From positions 248,001 to 312,000 of the forward strand of contig NW_026938421.1 in NCBI RefSeq assembly GCF_032062105.1: a stretch of DNA of 64,000 nt, read 5' to 3'. Of the stretch, positions 30,269 through 54,830 are shown in pieces (positions within the stretch are counted from its first letter, which is position 1; every line of letters starts with the position of its first letter). The translations under genes and the position numbers were made by a program. The notes under the pieces are model-generated. The model saw only the letters and a list, made by a program, of their open reading frames with translations, was not told the DNA's origin and did no database searches. This stretch comes from Saccostrea cucullata (lineage: Eukaryota).

Positions 30269-31721
30269 TGTGAGACAGGATGGTGTGATGACATAAAGGT
30301 GTGATGACATAAAGATGTGATGACAGGATGATGTGATGATAAGATGGTGTGATGACAGGATGAATGTGATGACTGGATAGTGTGATGACAGGATGGTATG
30401 ATGACTGGATAGTGTGATGACAGGATGGTATGATGAAAGGATGGTGTAATGACAGGATGGTATGATGATAAGATGGTGTAATGACAGGATGGTGTGATGA
30501 CATAAAGGTGTGATGACATGATGGTGTGATGACAGGATGGTATGATGATAAGATGGTGTAATGACAGGATGGTGTGATAACAGGATGGTGTGATGATAAG
30601 ATAGTGTAATGACAGGATGGTATGATGATAAGATGGTGTAATGACAGGATGGTGTGATGACAGGATGGTATGATGATAAGATGGTGTAATGACAGGATGG
30701 TGTGATAACAGGATGGTGTGATGATAAGATAGTGTAATGACAGGATGGTATGATGATAAGATGGTGTAATGACAGGATGGTGTGATGACAGGATGGTATG
30801 ATGATAGGATGGTGTAATGACAGGATGGTGTGATGACAGGATGGTATGATGATAAGATGGTGTAATGACATAAAGGTGTAATGACAGGATGGTGTGATGA
30901 CATAAAGGTGTGATGACATAAAGGTGTGATGACATGATGGTATGATGATAAGATGGTGTAATGACAGGATGGTGTGATAAAAGGATGGTGTGATGATAAA
31001 ATAGTGTAATGACAGGATGGTATGATGATAAGATGGTGTAATGACAGGATGGTGTGATGACATAAAGGTGTGATGACAGGATGGTATGATGATAAGATGG
31101 TGTAATGACAGGATGGTGTGATGACAGGATGGTATGATGATAAGATGGTGTAATGACAGGATGGTGTGATGACAGGATGGTATGATGATAAGATGGTGTA
31201 ATGACATAAAGGTGTAATGACAGGATGGTGTGATGACATAAAGGTGTGATGACATAAAGGTGTGATGACATGATGGTATGATGATAAGATGGTGTAATGA
31301 CAGGATGGTGTGATAAAAGGATGGTGTGATGATAAAATAGTGTAATGACAGGATGGTATGATGATAAGATGGTGTAATGACAGGATGGTGTGATGACATA
31401 AAGGTGTGATGACAGGATGGTATGATGATAAGATGGTGTAATGACATGATGGTGTGATGACAGGATGGTGTGATGATAAGATGGTGTAATGACATGATGG
31501 TGTAATGACAGGATGGTATGATGATAAGATGGTGTAATGACAGGATGGTGTGATGACATAAAGATGTGATGACAAGATGGTGTGATGATAAGATAGTGTA
31601 ATGACAGGATGGTGTGATGATAAGATGGTGTAATGACAGGATGGTGTGATGACATAAAGATGTGATGACAGGATGGTGTGATGATAAGATGGTGTAATGA
31701 CCGGATGGTGTGATGTCATAA

Positions 31722-32127
31722 ATTAGGGAATAACTATCTTCTAATTTGGTATTTGCGACCGTTAATGCTGATTTAACGGTCGCAAACATCCGTTTTACCG
31801 GCTCCGCTTACGCGTCGCCGGTAAAACTCAAGCGGAGCCGGTAAAACGGATGTTTGCGACCATTAAATCAGCATTAACGGTCGCAATTACCAAATTAGAA
31901 GATCAGTTATTCCCATTGTAATGCAATCTATATGCATTTTGTTTGTTGTTTACGTCTTATTTTGTTGAGTTTTGTTACATAAAATACGTCACGGGGCATT
32001 GTGTTTTTGCGTCGCTCTATTATGACGTCACAATGAAAAGCTCTCTGCCTCGTTAATGCTCGTTTCACTGCTTCAAACATCAGTGCAATAGCCAATGAAA
32101 GCGTGTTTTACAAAATAATTGCATTAG
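31722..32127. mobile_element. Crypton-like element with ~190-bp palindrome, copy 1
   Basis: GGGAATAACT...AGTTATTCCC palindrome (31726-31914) followed by a ~210-bp tail bounded by TAATGCAAT / ATTGCATTA; interrupts a satellite unit. Confidence 0.7.
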
Positions 32128-33924
32128 AAGATGTGATGACAGGATGGTGTGATGATAAGATGGTGTAATGACAGGATGGTGTTATGACATGATGGTGTGA
32201 TGACACAATGTTGTGATGACACGATTGGGTAATGATAGGAGTGGTGTAATGAGAGGATGGTGTAATGATATGAGTGGTGTGATGACATGATGGTGTGATA
32301 ACAGGATGGTGTTATGAGTTGATGGTGTGATGACATAATAGTGTGATGACATAAAGGTGTGATGACAGGATAAGATGGTGTAATGACATGATGGTGTGAT
32401 GACAGGATGGTGTTATGACAGGATGGTGTGATGACAAGATGTGATGGTGTAATGGTAGGAGTGGTGTAATGATAGGAGTGGTGTAATGACATGATGGTGT
32501 GATGACATGATGGTGTGATGATAAGATGGTGTTATGACGGATGGTGTGATGACATGATGTGGGATGACATGATGGTGTGATGACATGATGTTGGATGATA
32601 TGATGGTATATGACAGGATGGTGTGATGACATGATGGAGTAATGATAGGAGTGGTGTGATAACAGGATGGTGTTATGACAGGATGGTGTGATGACATAAA
32701 GGTGTGATCACAGGATGGTATGATGACATGATGATATGATGACTCGATAATGTGATGATATGATTGTGTTATGACAGGATGGTGTGATGATAGGATGGTG
32801 TGATGACAGGATGATGTGAAGACTGGATAGTGTGATGACAGGATGGTGTGGTGACAGGATGACGTGTTAACAGGATGTTGTGATAACAGGATGGTGTGTT
32901 GATAGGATGGTATGATGGCACGATGGTGTGATAACATAAAGGTGTGATGACATGATGGTGTGATGACATAATGGTGTGTTGACATAAAGGTGTGATGACA
33001 GGATCGTGTCATGATAAGATGGTGTATTGGCATGATGGTGTGATGACAGGATGGTGTTATGACAGGATGATATGATGACAGGATGGTGTGATGATAAGAT
33101 GGTGTAATGATAGGAGTGGTGTGATGACATGATGGTGTTATGACACGATGGTGTGATGACGGAATCGTATGATCATATGATAGTGTGATGATATGATTGT
33201 GTTATGACAGGATGGTGTGATGACAGGATGGTATGACAGGATGGTGTGATGACAGGATGATGTGAAGACAGGATGATATGATGACAGGATCGTGTAATGT
33301 TAGGAGTGTTGTGATGACAAGATAGCATGATAACAGGATAGTGTGATAACAGGATTGCGTGATGACACGATGGTGTTATAACATAAAGGTGTGATGACAT
33401 AATAGTGTGATGACATAAAGGTGTGATGACAGGATAGTGTGATGATAAAATGGTTTAATGACATGATGGTGTGATGACAGGATGGCGTGATGATATGATT
33501 GTGTTATGACAGGATGGTGTGTTGACAGGATCGTGTGATGATAGGATGGATGGTGTGATGACAGGATGATGTGAAGACGTGAGAGTGTGATGACAGGATG
33601 GTGTGATGACAGGATCGTGTAATGTTAGGAGTGGTGTGATGACAGGATGGCATGACAACAGGATAGTGTGATAACAGGATGGCATGATGATAGGATGGTG
33701 TTATAATATAAAGGTGTGATAACAGGATGGTGTTATGATAAGATGGTGTTATGACATGATGGTGTGATGACAGGATGGTGTGATGACAGGATGATGTGAT
33801 GACAGGATAGTGTTATGACACGATGGTGTGATGACAGGATGGTGTAATGATATGAGTGGTGTGATGACACGATGGTGTAATGATAGGAGTGGTCTGATGA
33901 CATGATGGTGTAATGATAGGAGTA

Positions 33925-34078
33925 TCAAATTGTACTCTAAACGCACTTTGAAAAAATTTTTCAAAGTGCGTTGAGTGTGTCCCAAATTTAACGCACTTTG
34001 AAAATTTTTTTCAAAGTGCGTTGATTTTGTCCCAATTTTTACGCACTTTGAAAAAAAATTTTCAGAGTGCGTTGCCAC
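33925..34078. mobile_element. Solo right-end fragment of the fold-back element family (second copy at 37002-37156)
   Basis: Three ACGCACTTTGAAAA..TTTTCAAAGTGCGT modules ending GTTGCCACA, as at 27587. Confidence 0.75.
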
Positions 34079-34773
34079 AATGGTGTGATGACAGGATCGT
34101 GTAATGATAGGAGTGGTGTGATGACAGGATGGCGTGATAACAGGATGGTGTGATAACAGGATGGCGTGATGATAGGATGGTGTGATAACAGGTGGGTGTG
34201 ATGATAGGATAGTGTGATGACACGATGGTGTGATGATAAGATGGGGTAATGACATGATGGTGCGATGACAGGATGGTGTGATGACATGATGGTGTTATGA
34301 CAGTATGATGTGATGACAGGATAGTGTGATGATAGGATCGTGTAATGTTAGGAGTGGTGTGAAGACAGGATAGTGTGATGACAGGATGGTGTGATAACAG
34401 GATGGTGTAATGACATGATGGTGTTATGACAGTATGATGTGATGATAGGATAGTGTGATGACAGGATGGTGTGATGATAGGATGGTGTGATGACAGGATG
34501 ATGTGATGTCAAGATGACGTTATACTGACAGGATGGTGTGATGACAGGATGGTATGATGATAAGATGGTGTAATGACAGGATGGTGTGATGACAGGATGG
34601 TATGATGATAAGATGGTGTAATGACAGGATGGTGTGATGACAGGATGGTGTGATGACAGGATGGTATGATGATAAGATGGTGTAATGGCAGGATGGTGTG
34701 ATGACATAAAGATGTGATGACAGGATGGTGTGATGATAAGATGGTGTAATGACTGGATGGTGTGATGTCATAA

Positions 34774-35156
34774 ATTAGGGAATAACTATCTTTTAATTTG
34801 GTATTTGCGACCGTTAATGCTGATTTAACGGTCGCAAACTGAGTTTTAACGGCGACGCGTAAGCGGAGCCGGTAAAACGGATGTTTGCGACCATTAAATC
34901 AGCATTAACGGTCGCAATTACCAAATTAGAAGATCAGTTATTCCCATTCTAATGCAATCTATGCATTTTGTTTGTTGTTTACGTCTTATTTTGTTGAGTT
35001 TTGTTACATAAAATACGTCACGGGGCATTGTGTTTTTGCGTCGCTCTATTATGACGTCACAATGAAAAGCTTTCTGCCTCGTTAATGCTCGTTTCACTGC
35101 TTCAAACATCAGTGCAATAGCCAATGAAAGCGTGTTTTACAAAATAATTGCATTAG
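34774..35156. mobile_element. Crypton-like element, copy 2 (part of the tandem duplication)
   Basis: Near-identical to 31722-32127 with the same flanks; differs at the palindrome centre. Confidence 0.7.
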
Positions 35157-38100
35157 AAGATGTGATGACAGGATGGTGTGATGATAAAATGGTGTAATGA
35201 CAGGATGGTGTTATGACATGATGGTGTGATGACACGATGTTGTAATGACACGATTGGGTAATGATAGGAGTGGTGTAATGAGAGGATGGTGTAATGATAT
35301 GAGTGGTGTGATGACATGATGGTGTTACGACAGGATGGTGTTATGACATGATGGTGTGATGACATAATAGTGTGATGACATAAAGGTGTGATGACAGGAT
35401 AAGATGGTGTAATGACCTGATGGTGTGATGACAGGATGGTGTTATGACAGGATGGTGTGATGACAAGATGTGATGGTGTAATGGTAGGAGTGGTGTAATG
35501 ATAGGAGTGGTGTAATGACATGATGGTGTGATGACATGATTGTGTGATGATAAGATGGTGTTATGACGGATGGTGTGATGACATGATGTGGGATGACATG
35601 ATGGTGTGATGATATGATGTTGGATGACATGATGGTATACGACAGGATGGTGTGATGACACGATGGTGTAATGATAGGAGTGGTGTGATAACGGGATGGT
35701 GTTATGACAGGATGGTGTGATGACATAAAGGTGTGATCACAGGATGGTATGATGACATGATGATATGATGACACGATAATGTGATGATAGGATTGTGTTA
35801 TGACAGGATGGTGTGATGACAGGATGGTGTGATGACAGGATGATGTGAAGACTGGATAGTGTGATGACAGGATGGTGTGGTGACAGGATGACGTATTAAC
35901 AGGATGTTGTGATAACAGGATGGTGTGTTGATAGGATGGTATGATGGCACGATGGTGTGATAACATAAAGGTGTGATGACATGATGGTGTGATGACATAA
36001 TGGTGTGTTGACATAAAGGTGTGATAACAGGATCGTGTCATGATAAGATGGTGTATTGGCATGATGGTGTGATGACAGGATGTTGTTATGACAGGATGAT
36101 ATGATGACAGGATGGTGTGATGATAAGATGGTATAATGATAGGAGTGGTGTGATGACATGATGGTGTTATGACACGATGGTGTGATGACGGAATCGTATG
36201 ATCATATGATAGTGTGATGATATGATTGTGTTATGACAGGATGGTGTGATGACAGGATGGTGTGATGACAGGATGGTGTGATGACAGGATGGTATGACAG
36301 GATGGTGTGATGACAGGATGATGTGAAGACAGGATGATATGATGACAGGATCGTGTAATGTTAGGAGTGTTCTGATGACAGGATAGCATGATAACAGGAT
36401 AGTGTGATAACAGGATTGCGTGATGACACGATGGTGTTATAACATAAAGGTGTGATGACATAATAGTGTGATGACATAAAGGTGTGATGACAGGATAGTG
36501 TGATGATAAAATGGTTTAATGACATGATGGTGTGATGACAGGATGGCGTGATGATATGATTGTGTTATGACAGGATGGTGTGTTGACAGGATCGTGTGAT
36601 GATAGGATGGATGGTGTGATGACAGGATGATGTGAAGACGTGAGAGTGTGATGACAGGATGGTGTGATGACAGGATCGTGTAATGTTAGGAGTGGTGTGA
36701 TGACAGGATGGCATGACAACAGGATAGTGTGATAACAGGATGGCGTGATGATAGGATGGTGTTATAATATAAAGGTGTGATAACAGGATGGTGTTATGAT
36801 AAGATGGTGTAATGACATGATGGTGTGATGACAGGATGGTGTTATGACATGATGGTGTTATGACATGATGGTGTGATGACAGGATGATGTGATGATAGGA
36901 TGGTGTCATGACAGGATGGTGTAATGATATGAGTGGTGTGATGACACGATGGTGTAATGATAGGAGTGGTCTGATGACATGATGGTGTAATGATAGGAGT
37001 GTCAAATTGTACTCTAAACGCACTTTGAAAAAATTTTTCAAAGTGCGTTGAGTGTGTCCCAAATTTAACGCACTTTGAAAAATTTTTTCAAAGTGCGTTG
37101 ATTTTGTCCCAATTTTTACGCACTTTGAAAAAATTTTTTCAGAGTGCGTTGCCACAATGGTGTGATGACAGGATCGTGTAATGATAGGAGTGGTGTGATG
37201 ACAGGATGGCGTGATAACAGGATGGTGTGATAACAGGATGGCGTGATGATAGGATAGTGTGATGATAGGATGGTGTGATAACAGGTGGGTGTGATGATAG
37301 GATAGTGTGATGACACGATGGTATGATGATAAGATAGTGTAATGACATGATGGTGCGATGACAGGATGGTGTAATGACAGGATGATGTGATGACATTATG
37401 GTGTTATGACAGTATGATGTGATGACAGGATAGTGTGATGATAGGATCGTGTAATGTTAGGAGTGGTGTGAAGACAGGATAGTGTGATGACAGGATGGTG
37501 TGATAACAGGATGGTGTAATGACATGACGGTGTTATGACAGTATGATGTGATGATAGGATAGTGTGATGACAGGATGGTGTGATGATAGGATGGTGTGAT
37601 GACACGATGATGTGATGTCAAGATGACGTTATATCATAATAGTGTAATGACAGAATGTTGTGATGACGTGATACTGTAAATCAATAGGCCTAAAGAATTT
37701 AATATGAAATTATATATCAAGTTCAAGGGTCATGCTCCAAATTATTAACCGAGTGATTTGTCATGATCCCGGATAGCATTTACCAATTCATTCGGTTCAT
37801 TTTACATTTTAAAAATCTTTTGATGTTATTCAGACCTCATTCCGATACTGTTTTAGGAATATCTCATCGGCATACTTCATATAGAATTTTATAAATTTTA
37901 GAGATAAAACAACTGCCTTTCATTGATCTAAATTTGATTATAAAAAAAAAATAGAACGTGACAAATTATTTGTCATGCATTTTATTTCAACTTTTGGCTC
38001 AAAATTAATAAAAGACCCCATGATATAAAATATCATATGCATTCCTCCTTTTTTCATTAAAACTTGGCAAACACAGTGTAATAGTGAAATGGATAAAATT

Positions 38101-48401: not shown

Positions 48402-51400
48402 TTAGTCGAACAGACCTGAAATAGATAAAACAGAAAATTAACATTTGATTAATACCAGGAAGATTTATCAATCAGGTAATATGTTATTAAACTTACTCTT
48501 ATGTCCTACATTTCAATCATTTTCCTATACACGTGTATATATTAAATTCTTGAAGTAAAATTACAAATTGCGGTTTTCATGTTCTTGACGATGTCTACAT
48601 TTTTCTACATAAATCTAGGATCACTAATTTGTGACCCCAGCACTATCACTAGAGCACTGTTCAGTACAAACGTAATCTAGCCATTGTGACAATGCTTGTA
48701 TATCAATTAAAGCTGACATGAATTCTTAAAAACGCAACTTTTTCATCTATGTACGACTTGTTTCATACCAACTATAGCCGTATTCCGCCATATTTCTTTC
48801 AGATACCTTGTCTTATTGTAACGATATATACCCCAATGCCCTCGTTACACTTGAATTATTTTTTGGCTTGGCTATCGACTTGTGCACATCTCCGATGGTA
48901 AAACATTTGAGAACACATGGGTTGATCAAGACATTTCAAAACCACAACAAACAACATAATAATCATATTTCTGAATAATTATTGATTTTAATCAAATGTA
49001 ATAATTATAAAAAGAAAGAAAATGCAAGTTTGAAAGAAAGATTTAGTTGCAAGACAATGTATTTTCACAGGGCGCCAATTTATGCAGAATAAACTTGAAA
49101 TAAAAAGCAGTAAAACCCGTAAACACACTTTGAAATTATTATCATTTGAATGGAACAAAACAACCAGCGTCTTTGATTTGCAAGTTTTATGCAGTTGATG
49201 CATGTCGAGAAAACGCGTCGAACGCTGTAAAAGTACCCATACCTGGTAATAAGATCACTGCATCGGTTCGAAGATGTGCACAAGTCAAGTGATATACACC
49301 CTGAATTCCATTTATTGAAATATGCATCACAAAAAAAGAAATAAACTCCATAAAAACTCAAAAGTAAACACACTGTTACTACTCCGTACAGTCTAGGGGG
49401 GGGGGGGCTAAAGTATAATTATAACGGCTTTATAAGGTATAACTGAAAATTGTCTATCTAGTTCTAATAACATTCTATTTATAGTCTGCAGTTGTTTTGC
49501 ATCACAAAATTTTCATTTGTCAATTACAACTGATTATTTTAGTACTAATCTCAAATCTAAGCCAAGTAATTTGATATACGGTAATTATTTACTTCAAGAC
49601 TTAAAAGCATTAAACCATGGCCAGTATACATAATTTCATGTGTACATCTGTACGTTCTTTAACACACACGCGGAAAAAAAAATCCCCTGTTTAGATTGAC
49701 ATTTAGGGGGGGGGGGGGGGGGAGGGGGCAGAAAGAATTGACATGACCATTACCTAAATATTTTAAGAAGACAGACATTTCTGCCTAATCCATTTTTGAG
49801 ATTTTTTATTGTCTCACTCCGACCACAAATTATGTACATTTTTGCGGAATGTGGCTGTTTTATAATTATTACAGGAAGTCTTTCGAGATTTCAGTAATCA
49901 GTATCCCTGTCTGACAGTCTAGTTTTTTTTTTTAAATGAAAATAATTTCTGTTGCAATATTTGGGAGATATTTTTAAAAACTAGGGTAGGGATGCTTGAA
50001 ACCTGGTTGAATACAGATAGGTTTTAATTACTCTTTTATTCATTGAACTCTCTCTCTCTCTCTCTCTCTCCTCCTGTAACCATCCGTAAGCGCAATAATA
50101 GATATAAAATCATATGCACTTTGTGCTGTACCATTTATCAGATCTTGGGACAGATCAAGGATTTTTTTTCAGGCGGGGATGTCGAAACTTGTCAGTTCAA
50201 AAATTAAAATACTAATTTTACTTTTGACAAAAAAATAAACCTAAATGCCGAAAATGAAAGGGAAATAAACATGAAATCTACATCATAGGAATGGGAACGT
50301 TAGCCGATGACTTCCAATTCTTCAAACCTTAGACTTTTCATACCAATTTAACACAAATTCGTGTTTACCTGGTAGTCTGCGTTTTCCGAGGGGATTCAAG
50401 GTAACTTTTTTCTTCCTTTAGTATATAAATTTAAAAACCTTGCAAATCGCAGGGGGGGGGGGGGGTCCTGACCCCCCTCTAGATCTGCGCATGGCACTCA
50501 TGCATAGAATCACACCACGGCCACTTCAAATTATATTGAAGGGGGACCTCCAAAATTAGTTGACAAGGACACAAAACAAAACAAAACTAAAAAAACTATG
50601 CACCACACTCTAAAATCCTTTTTTTGGTAGGGGATAGAGGGGGGCTTCCTGTAACTTTTCTGTTTGATACATTACTTTTGAATGCTTGAATCTGCGTATT
50701 TTCCGGCAACAAAATATGTGGCGGGAGCTTCCAAATCAAAATATTATGTTTACAACTGCAGCAAAAGATTATCCTCAGAAAATTGAGCCCCCCCACATTA
50801 TGAATAACATTAAACACTGTTTTCTGAGAAAATTGTGCTCGTTTATAAAGAAAAAAAAATAAAATATGCCCCCGGCCTAAATTCCCATACTTCACATTTA
50901 TAGCAACCTACAATTTTTTGTTTAGTTTCTTATTCACGCATGCTTTATAGATCTACTGTTATGTATAAAATCACCTATATATTTTTGTGGTCTCTGTATA
51001 CTGTTGTAAAATGGTGAAGAGATTCAAATAAATGATCGAAAAATGATTGCAGATACACGGAGGGAAGCAAATCCGCGAAAATCTACAGATCTAGCGAACA
51101 GAAAGGACAGAGATTTTTTATATTTCTTCAAATTATTAGACGTATAAATATCTATATTCTATATGACAGAAAAAAATTCTCTCTCTGTGTGTGTATGTGT
51201 GTACAAAAATAAAGGGGGTTCCAATCTCCGGAACCCCACCCCACCTCTGGATCCGCCAATGAATTCTATTTTGATCATTCATGTACCACAGAATCAAACT
51301 CGTTTATTGTGTATAAAATTATAAAACAAGTTTAAATCAAGTTATATTAAGTCTATATTTTAAAAAATAAAGCCAATACACAGTATTTAAAATGAAAATG

Positions 51401-54400
51401 TTTGATCGCAATGAAATCTGATCTTTTTAGAGAGCGTTATGCATTTTTTTTTATTACCCCCCCCCCCCCCCCTTTCACGGGAGAATCTCGTCAAAGGATA
51501 AATGATTCGTTTTGTTGCATGCTATAAAATAAATTTAATGTAGTTAAACCATGTTTATAAATTTTGTTTTCATTTACATATACAGACAAGAGTTGAAAAA
51601 AAAATTATTTGCGTTTTTTCAATCAACCAAAATACCAGTAAGTTTTCCACCTTTGAAATTTCCCCTAACCAAATAGACTGATCGTCATGGACCACGTGTG
51701 TCCAAGTGCTATGTGGTGACAATTTTATACTGTTCAGTTAGCAATGGATTACATGACTTCTGAGATGCATATTTCAATAAAAGTAAAATAGGATATTTCT
51801 TTCGACATGTGCACATCCCTGTAACGATAGCAGTATTCAGGTAAATGTCTTTATCACTGCGTTCGATGCGTATTCTCGACCTGCATGCGTGCATATCCAA
51901 ACGGTTTTTGCTGTTTTCCGTTGTTTTTTCTTATTTGCAGCAAATGCATTCTAAAATAATTTACTTCTCAGTATAGTTCTAGTTTTTGTTGGATTTTAAC
52001 TTTTAAAACATGTATTTGGTCAGTTTATGGATTTATGACAACTATGCTATCGGAGATGTGTACATGTCGACAGCCAGGCTAGAAAATCACTCAAGTGAAA
52101 CAAATGTACCAGGCTTTATATAACAGGTACAGGTGGCCAAAAATTTTCAAGTAAATATGGCGGAATCAGAGAAATATGGCGGACAAAGGCGCACAGGAAT
52201 GTAGTAAGTCGTACAAAGATGAAAAATGATGCCTTTTTAAGAGTTCATGTCAGCTTTAATATGAATCTATTTGTGAGTGGTCAATAAAACAAGTAAATCT
52301 CACCAAATCCCATGTCTTCATCAGACTCTGATTCTTCTTTCTTCTCCTCCTTCTTGGGAGCTATAAATAGAAATCACAAACTCCATTTAAATATACTGGC
52401 AATATCTTGTCACACACAGATTAAAACTGAACTCGGCTAATTAAGTTTCCTTTCAGAAGTATCCATTTCCCCACTGATTTCAATTTACTATTATCGGTCT
52501 TTTTTACTGATTTTCAATTTGATAATTTTTTTCCCTAAAGATCTGTTGTGAAATTGAAGCTGCACCAACTAAAATTATTTTTCCCTCGTAATACTGAATA
52601 CTTTTACTGTAATACATTATACAAATGTAAAAAAAAAAATCATCCCCACTTTTATTTTCACCACTCTGCCCTATACACAGGTGGGAGAATTTAAACCCAG
52701 GTGAATTCAAAGAACAGGGTATAATTTCTTAAACAGATCTATGACTGTTACCTAACTTAGCTACCTGTATAAGGTAAGTAAATAGAGTAAACAGATGATT
52801 AATTTTCTAAGCTACCTATATAAGGTATACATGAAGTAAACAGATTTTTACCTTTCTTGTCATCAGCTGGGGCAGCAGCAGCAGCAGCTGGGGCGGCAGC
52901 AGGGGCAGCTCCGGCACCACTGGAAATGTTGGAGATCATCTCCTTAACATTGACACCATCCAAAGCCTTAGCAAACAGGGCTGTAATGCAGAAATTCATA
53001 AATCAATCATCTTTTATAAAATATCAGTTTTGTTCATACATTCTTGCAATGCCAGTATGGCTCAAGAGCTTAAATTCCTATCAACCTACACGGCCAGTAG
53101 GGTTCATCTGCATTTGAATTAAATATCTACTTTAATGCATCAAGATAGCTTGAATTCATATCTATACTTAAAAGGCCAGTACGATTCGACAGAGCTTGCA
53201 GAGATTTTAAACTACCCCGTGTAGGGCCGAATATGGACCCCATTCTCAATTGCAAAACTCCTCCCTTTTTCCCAAAAATGAACTGCCTATATTCAATTTT
53301 TGAAAGAACAAGAACTCAAGAAGGTTACCTGAACATAATTCACAAAATACAAACATACATGTTTAGGTTTGGAAATTTGAATGAAATTTGAATGAAATAA
53401 ACAAAATTTTGAAGAATCTTGGGTAAAACTTTATTATAATGATCAATTCTCCAATTCATAGTTCTGAATAACTAAGTAAAGATCAATTTTTATTCATCTT
53501 AAGTATTTATTTCTTGAAAAACATCATACAATAAAATTTCCCAATAAGTGATAAAATGTCGTAAAATTCCCAATTCCAAGGGCCTGGGCCCCATTCCCAA
53601 AAGTGAGTGGAAAATCCCTGGCTTGAATTCAGTATGATCTATACATGTACTTACAAGGCCAGTATGGTTCAACTGAGACTCCAGCAGCCTTCAAGATGGT
53701 ATTGATTTTCTCCCCCTGAGGAAAAAAAAAATTACTTCAGGGATTCTGGAATTACAGGATTCATACAATATCATTAAACTGCATTTCTTCTAGACATGTA
53801 ATTCCCCTTTCAGTCTTGTGTACTTTCATTCTAAGAGTACTTGGTTGTATACATTTTGCTTTGAACCCAGCATAAAAATTATTGGAAATGTGACTGGTCC
53901 CATTTTAGTATGCTACTGATTCATGGAAAGTGATGAAAATCACAAATAAGGTCCTCATCCTAAGCTTCATTTGTCAAGTCCAATGAAGAACCAGTTATAC
54001 AATGATTAACAGAAATATTTTAGAGCTGCCCTGAATCACTTGAGTATGATGGGAGATTGCAACAATACATTGGGTAGCTGGCTAGATGCACAATATGTTT
54101 TACAGAAGTTTCTCTACAAGTAGTCACTAGATGGTCACTTAAACTAATGTTTTGATTAAAATATCAAAGATTGTTGCACACTTATTGTTAAATACCATGT
54201 GGGTAGATTGAATTTCCTCTACATACCAAATGCTTTCGACAGTCGACACATAAATAGAATACTATGATCGACTTTTATACATCGCTTTTCCTCAGTTTCC
54301 ACACTCTGTTATAAAAGCTCTGCTTTCTTGCGGTACCTTACAATGGGCAAAACATTAGAAACACCGAAACTCTTCAACCAATATATACACCTACATGTGA

Positions 54401-54488
54401 AAAGGGGGTTACTTACTGTGATCGCTACTTGATCGTCTGCGAGAATCAAAGCTGCATAAACGCAAGCAAGTTCGTCTGAAGAAGACAT
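48402..54488 (-). CDS. RPLP1: 60S acidic ribosomal protein P1, 110 aa
   Basis: Exons 54417-54488, 53655-53715, 52852-52980, 52304-52360, 48402-48415 (333 nt): [51 protein letters not shown]...Ala-rich hinge...EESESDEDMGFGLFD*; all introns GT-AG and phase-consistent. Confidence 0.96.
48711..52255. mobile_element. Kolobok-like non-autonomous TIR element filling the last RPLP1 intron
   Basis: TTAA-AGCTGACATGAATTCTTAAAAA ... TTTTTAAGAGTTCATGTCAGCT-TTAA; imperfect TIR of ~50 bp plus subterminal TTCCGCCATATTT / AAATATGGCGGAA; no transposase ORF. Confidence 0.85.
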
Positions 54489-54533
54489 TGTTTTTACTTC
54501 TACTGATTTCGTTAATTGATGCCTAAGTATAAC

Positions 54534-54581
54534 AGTGTAAGTCGCCGGATTGGCCTTAGCTCTTTTTGAGAACTGTACACT
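54534..54581 (-). promoter_or_regulatory. Candidate structured cis-element in the RPLP1 5'UTR
   Basis: Minus-strand AGUGUA-C-AGUU ... GACU-UACACU stem enclosing AGCUAAGGC and AUCCGGC; see findings. Confidence 0.55.
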
Positions 54582-54589
54582 TTACGAAG

Positions 54590-54830
54590 GAAAATTGCGG
54601 AAGAGGCCGGAAGTAGATAAAAATTAAAGAATAGAAGTCAAGACTTCCAAATATTCACGAGGTCCTAGAAGATGTGTCCTAAGAAACATAATATAAAGCA
54701 AAATGCATAATTTGTATTTTGGTTAAAGGTTTCTGAATTAAATAAAATTGTATTCTCTTTGGTTTAGAGATTATATGAGGATTATACAATTTGAATCGGT
54801 ATCGATTCATTCCGGCAAATAACTGTCAAC
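54590..54830. promoter_or_regulatory. Shared bidirectional promoter region of RPLP1 and TXNDC5
   Basis: Start codons are divergent and about 340 bp apart; TCT/5'TOP-like CCTCTTCC on the minus strand at 54599-54606 next to an ETS/GABP site CCGGAAGT (54607-54614). Confidence 0.7.

Follow-up and report, generated by a model that had tools for sequence, protein, structure and literature searches.

A candidate ribosomal RNA mimic in the RPLP1 leader of Saccostrea cucullata

A short stretch upstream of the gene for ribosomal stalk protein P1 is conserved across animals but has never been explained. The sequence analysed here (the window) is 64,000 nucleotides from the oyster Saccostrea cucullata (assembly GCF_032062105.1, contig NW_026938421.1, positions 248,001 to 312,000 of the forward strand), and the element lies at window positions 54534-54581 on the minus strand, in the 5' UTR of RPLP1. 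It folds into a small copy, at the level of secondary structure and sequence register, of the rRNA junction where the stalk docks. Thus, the leader may allow spare stalk complexes to switch off P1 synthesis, much as occurs in bacteria, a reading that is about as likely as not on present evidence.

The element and its gene

A preliminary description drew attention to window positions 54534-54584, and reported that AGUGUA (54581-54576) pairs with UACACU (54539-54534) and that, after a bulged C (C54575), AGUU pairs with GACU. These 51 nucleotides and both pairings were found as described, between a predicted TCT-type start (C at 54605) and the ATG at 54488, and the observation is confirmed. The human RPLP1 sequence cited for comparison agrees with the published Homo rows (supplement of PMC4613772, compared by eye). 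However, two inner hairpins that make the structure a three-way junction were missed.

The gene is RPLP1. With the exons searched separately, exon 1 matches P1 chains in the PDB, and the five coding exons add up to 110 codons plus a stop codon, in agreement with the 110 amino acids of a database protein named P1-like of Saccostrea cucullata (P0257 in our set). In the close relative Magallana gigas, intronless Logan contigs that translate to P1 carry the element upstream of the start codon, indicating that it is present in spliced mRNA of that species. A covariance model of the element has a single match in the 1.17-Gb genome, namely this one. The 5' end of the P0 gene was not found in the contig examined, and thus the P0 leader is covered only by this whole-genome search. 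Furthermore, no element was seen upstream of an intronless mite P1 (locus L157) or of a probably non-animal P1 (L158).

Table 1. Features of the RPLP1 locus and other features of the window. Positions are those of the window; rRNA positions follow E. coli numbering.
Position	Strand	Feature	Basis
54599-54606	-	TCT-type start and short 5' oligopyrimidine tract; predicted +1 is C54605	Predicted from sequence and a pattern scan, without reads
54574-54581	-	Outer stem P1a, 5' strand AGUGUA, bulged C54575, then A54574	Sequence; comparison of loci
54571-54573	-	P1b 5' strand GUU (equivalent to rRNA 1054-1056, top of H42)	Comparison of loci and with rRNA
54560-54570	-	P2 hairpin CUC/GAG with variable loop (stub of H43; closing pair equals C1057-G1081)	Comparison of loci and with rRNA; compensatory CUU/AAG in supplement rows of PMC4613772
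54555-54559	-	Junction loop CUAAG, identical to 28S 1082-1086, holding the unpaired UAA that L10 recognises in bacteria	Comparison with rRNA; PMC4538822
54544-54554	-	P3 hairpin GCC/GGC with loop AAUCC (stub of H44; closing pair equals G1087-C1102)	Comparison of loci; both-side changes in Steinernema and Tyrophagus
54534-54543	-	3' strands of P1b (GAC, equivalent to 1103-1105) and of the outer stem (U, UACACU)	Comparison of loci
54547-54551	-	AUCC of the P3 loop
about 54520-54530	-	Second short word like the junction loop
54417-54488	-	RPLP1 coding part of exon 1	Match to P1 chains in the PDB
53655-53715	-	RPLP1 exon 2	Read from sequence
52852-52980	-	RPLP1 exon 3
52304-52360	-	RPLP1 exon 4	Read from sequence
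48402-48415	-	RPLP1 last coding exon with stop codon
54831-62285	+	Thioredoxin-domain gene (TXNDC5-like), head to head with RPLP1, about 230 nt from the RPLP1 start
30269-37667		7.4-kb tandem array of a 16-nt unit with strong GC skew (about +0.6), interrupted twice by the same short 50-nt repeat

As a sequence, the element is already published. It is the RPLP1 conserved non-coding element reported in 33 of 38 animals, from Trichoplax and Nematostella to mammals, as three linear motifs (PMC4613772). The three motifs occur in order within 150 nt of the RPLP1 start, and the Crassostrea rows match the window. That study proposes no structure, ligand or link to rRNA for the element, and the terms 'rRNA' and 'autoregulat' do not occur in it; its division of motif 1 into 1a and 1b corresponds to the 5' strand of a covarying stem. 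Searches of the literature, in a collection lacking most subscription papers, found no other description of a structure or an rRNA mimic in this leader, and a scan of Rfam returned no relevant family at E values up to 1. The preliminary description knew of no earlier account of the element; as a sequence it is described, whereas no account of the fold and its likeness to rRNA was found.

A three-way junction shared by animal leaders

Taken alone, the 141-nt region does not fold better than shuffled sequences (z -0.10), and the evidence for structure is comparative rather than thermodynamic. RPLP1 loci were collected through their proteins (Magallana, chiton, octopus, Dreissena, springtail, mayfly, Drosophila species, Steinernema and an ostracod), and through a DNA pattern (a mite and two loci from what look like coral metagenomes). 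The latter three were found by a pattern that fixes the core, with a spacer too short for mammals, and the pattern scan of metagenomes was swamped by a bacterial repeat and gave only four true loci. A parser anchored only on the loop and on pairing rules found the same fold in all 16 motif-bearing animal loci: outer stem P1a, a bulge or small loop, P1b (GUU/GAC), hairpin P2 (CUC/GAG, loop of 3-9 nt), the CUAAG loop, and hairpin P3 (GCC/GGC, loop of 3-24 nt), with no linker elsewhere. When one Drosophila row was kept, leaving 13 loci, 168 of 169 pair cells are standard pairs and six cells change on both sides, values that were reached in none of 5000 shuffles. A separate count on the plain alignment gives 8 pairs with a both-side change (0 of 500 shuffles), and 84% pairing as compared to 32-39% for slid partners. 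These shuffles ignore relatedness.

P2 does not vary in the loci collected here, and its support comes from published supplement rows read by eye (PMC4613772), which are also the only mammalian evidence. These rows show the CUU/AAG form of P2 in two mammals and a leech, and the CUC/GGG form in tick and aphid; for P3, they add GCU/GGC in the leech and a 7-bp helix in Nematostella. In two rows the junction loop is changed, to CUUAG in the leech and CCAAG in a centipede.

A competing fold was considered. In molluscs the energy model prefers a shifted GUUC/GAGC pairing, with a junction probability of about 0.3, and RNAalifold on the plain alignment chose this pairing and missed the outer stem because hexapod rows are offset by one column. 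However, the shifted pairing is broken in Steinernema and in the mammal, leech and Daphnia supplement rows, including the P2 variants above, and was rejected as the conserved form. The junction is therefore the conserved form, but it is only marginally stable without help.

Register with the stalk site of 28S rRNA

The 28S rRNA of the same genome has GCUAAGG once on its sense strand, and the Rfam structure line places it at the junction of H42, H43 and H44 (the GTPase-associated centre). Here, H43 closes with C-G, followed by C-UAA-G, and H44 opens with G-C. The leader shares the helix order and the zero-length linkers, and is identical to 28S at 11 of 19 junction positions. Where 28S and E. 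coli differ, the leader follows 28S at three pairs (1054-1105, 1057-1081 and 1082-1086) and E. coli at one (1058-1080). A descriptor written from 28S features alone hits 28S once, does not hit E. coli 23S, hits the window once (at 54559), and hits all 16 leaders. Random sequence gives 0.6-2.2 hits per Mb, or 0.7-2.6 in 10,000 per leader, but the descriptor was chosen after both RNAs had been seen and this figure is optimistic; a hundredfold penalty still leaves a few percent.

The differences from rRNA matter. The pair G1055-C1104, which receives A1085 in rRNA, is U-A in the leader, and the sheared 1056/1103 pair is a wobble or standard pair (U-G, U-A or C-G; rRNA contacts from PMC1919483). 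H43 and H44 are cut to 3-bp stubs, and the tips that bind uL11 are missing. In addition, Kt-42 is replaced by a bulge or a U-U loop, and no kink-turn, that is, no tandem G-A pairs with a bulge, was found in any of the 13 loci. The preliminary description had included AUCC in the proposed mimic, which is not supported: in rRNA this word precedes the loop, as the 3' strand of H43, whereas in the mRNA it follows the loop, and many species lack it. It is kept in Trichoplax, many lophotrochozoans, some arthropods and mammals, but is lost in flies, nematodes and cnidarians, and has no rRNA counterpart in register. The interpretation offered in the preliminary description, a deeply conserved stalk-sensing leader that mimics rRNA, is therefore partly supported. 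Deep conservation, preserved pairing and presence in spliced mRNA are borne out, and the likeness to 28S is stronger than was stated because the whole junction is in register, while binding and autoregulation remain inferences.

A possible feedback switch on P1 synthesis

In bacteria, L10(L12)4 recognises a kink-turn and an unpaired UAA in both 23S rRNA and the leader of its own mRNA (PMC4538822, PMC3616713). A yeast model has P0 touching the rRNA backbone near 1218, 1229, 1258 and 1281 (PMC2699499). With a numbering offset of 175 applied here, these positions become 1043, 1054, 1083 and 1106, so that three of the four fall in the part kept by the leader and the fourth is the kink-turn. The distance from the predicted +1 to the equivalent of G1054 is 30-32 nt in five molluscs, Folsomia and Drosophila, whereas the distance to the AUG varies fivefold, from 15 to 76 nt. 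The mayfly deviates, and no nearby TCT motif was seen in the nematode, ostracod, mite or coral-type loci. In Steinernema the element begins right at an acceptor-like site (L154, positions 1430-1440), and a trans-spliced leader of about 22 nt would restore the usual cap distance. A protein site held close to the cap is the arrangement of the ferritin IRE, and the position of the element fits a steric block of initiation.

In the favoured model, a free stalk complex containing uL10/P0, most likely P0(P1-P2)2 in excess of 60S sites, would bind the leader through the CUAAG loop and the adjacent stem. Because the junction lies about 25-70 nt from the predicted cap, at a fixed distance, the bound complex would block 43S loading and lower P1 synthesis, and the leader would be released when new 60S subunits take up the complex. 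Folding probabilities suggest that the fold should not block scanning without the protein. The sequence, its conservation, the secondary structure and the register with 28S are shown by the comparisons made here; the three-dimensional likeness, the ligand and its binding, and the sign of regulation are inferred. The absence of a kink-turn, which is critical for bacterial L10 binding, and the two divergent junction pairs weigh against the model. Published genetics is neutral to mildly adverse. Rplp1 heterozygous mice are clearly haploinsufficient (PMC4069005), and thus feedback, if present, does not make up for a lost allele. P2 depletion lowers P1 in some cells but not in HEK293A (PMC11834158). 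P1 levels are already explained in part by stabilisation through P2.

If this reading is correct, it would give a concrete and readily testable function to one of the oldest conserved non-coding elements of animals, and a possible answer to how stalk stoichiometry and the free P1/P2 pool are set. rRNA-mimic feedback on translation is textbook in bacteria but rare in animals, and stalk dosage affects development (as in Rplp1 haploinsufficiency), GCN2 signalling and membrane-protein synthesis. Somewhat less likely than not, but not excluded, is that animals invented their own kink-turn-free version of the bacterial L10 switch more than 670 million years ago, setting P1 output through the free P0(P1-P2)2 complex, with the equally ancient RPLP2 element as its possible partner. 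This RPLP2 element (PMC4613772) is present in the genome at the end of the non-coding first exon (contig C18888, positions 282270-282294; positions 1490-1530 of locus L010). It has a GUC/GAC hairpin followed by UUAAA, the E. coli form of the 1082-1086 loop, and then a splice donor, with the next exon starting one base before the ATG. However, it is not matched by the RPLP1 model or descriptor, and the A run may simply be start-codon context.

Alternative explanations

An unlikely alternative is that the leader uses the junction to bind some other factor, for example in TOP-type or embryonic translational control, and that the likeness to rRNA follows from the fold. Family C junctions are frequent (PMC1747187), the kink-turn and two junction pairs are not copied, and there are conserved features with no rRNA counterpart, namely the GUGY/RCAC outer stem and the AUCC loop. 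In addition, a multi-copy bacterial repeat with terminal inverted repeats, which looks like the Neisseria Correia element, contains a 27-nt word that reads as the same junction core without the outer stem (20 bits with the covariance model; metagenome loci L019, L020 and about 110 others), probably by coincidence. Against this view, it would be a coincidence that the one gene carrying the element encodes a stalk protein, and that it uses the C1082-G1086, C1057-G1081 and G1054-C1105 variants of 28S.

Similarly doubtful is an rRNA mimic that is not a translational repressor site, but that recruits P0 to the P1 mRNA for co-translational stalk assembly or activation, or is bound by the P0 paralogue MRT4 on the nascent transcript. 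Mrt4 and P0 share the rRNA site (PMC2699499), and haploinsufficiency of Rplp1 argues against strong negative feedback. However, the fixed cap-proximal position fits an initiation block, protein bound in the 5' UTR would be displaced by scanning, and exon 1 has no alternative splice feature at the element.

A ligand-free structure that only tunes scanning or mRNA stability is very unlikely, although no ligand has been shown, as the weak stability and the invariant unpaired loop letters over all phyla sampled point to a binding surface. Least likely is a DNA-level promoter element, possibly serving the head-to-head thioredoxin-domain gene too, as suggested by the fixed distance from +1 and by a bidirectional promoter kept in bivalves and chiton (the arrangement is the same in Magallana, chiton and Dreissena), given the compensatory changes in three helices, the variable loops, the different neighbours in arthropods and nematodes, and the acceptor-like site in Steinernema.

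Comparison with other regulatory leaders

The bacterial L10 leader (rplJL) is likewise the leader of a stalk-protein mRNA that resembles the stalk site of large-subunit rRNA, with an unpaired UAA/AA in a loop above the stem. The RPLP1 leader has CUAAG in all 16 loci, in a true three-way junction with the 28S-type loop, but lacks the kink-turn and encodes only P1 rather than uL10. In the stem below, where the bacterial leader has a bulged C in the non-canonical stem after the kink-turn, a bulged pyrimidine is seen in molluscs and cnidarian-type loci and a U-U loop in hexapods, neither in register with C1049. Thus, the element is not a member of the bacterial L10 leader family but may work like one, probably with an independent origin. 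Feedback by ribosomal proteins through rRNA look-alikes, or a cap-proximal protein site that blocks 43S loading, is represented in eukaryotes by the plant 5S mimic P5SM, the yeast L30 site and the ferritin IRE. These have a different ligand and fold, P5SM and L30 act mainly on splicing, and no such case is known to us for the animal stalk.

Two minor observations concern sequences resembling parts of the element or of 28S. A second short word like the loop (CUUAGGC, CUAAGGC or UUAAGG) lies downstream of the element in three bivalves, without the surrounding stems, in the window and at about -40 from the ATG in loci L150 and L159. Lastly, an E. coli genome record (NZ_CP081009.1, positions 4533592-4533748) holds a piece 89% identical to oyster 28S, likely contamination or vector.
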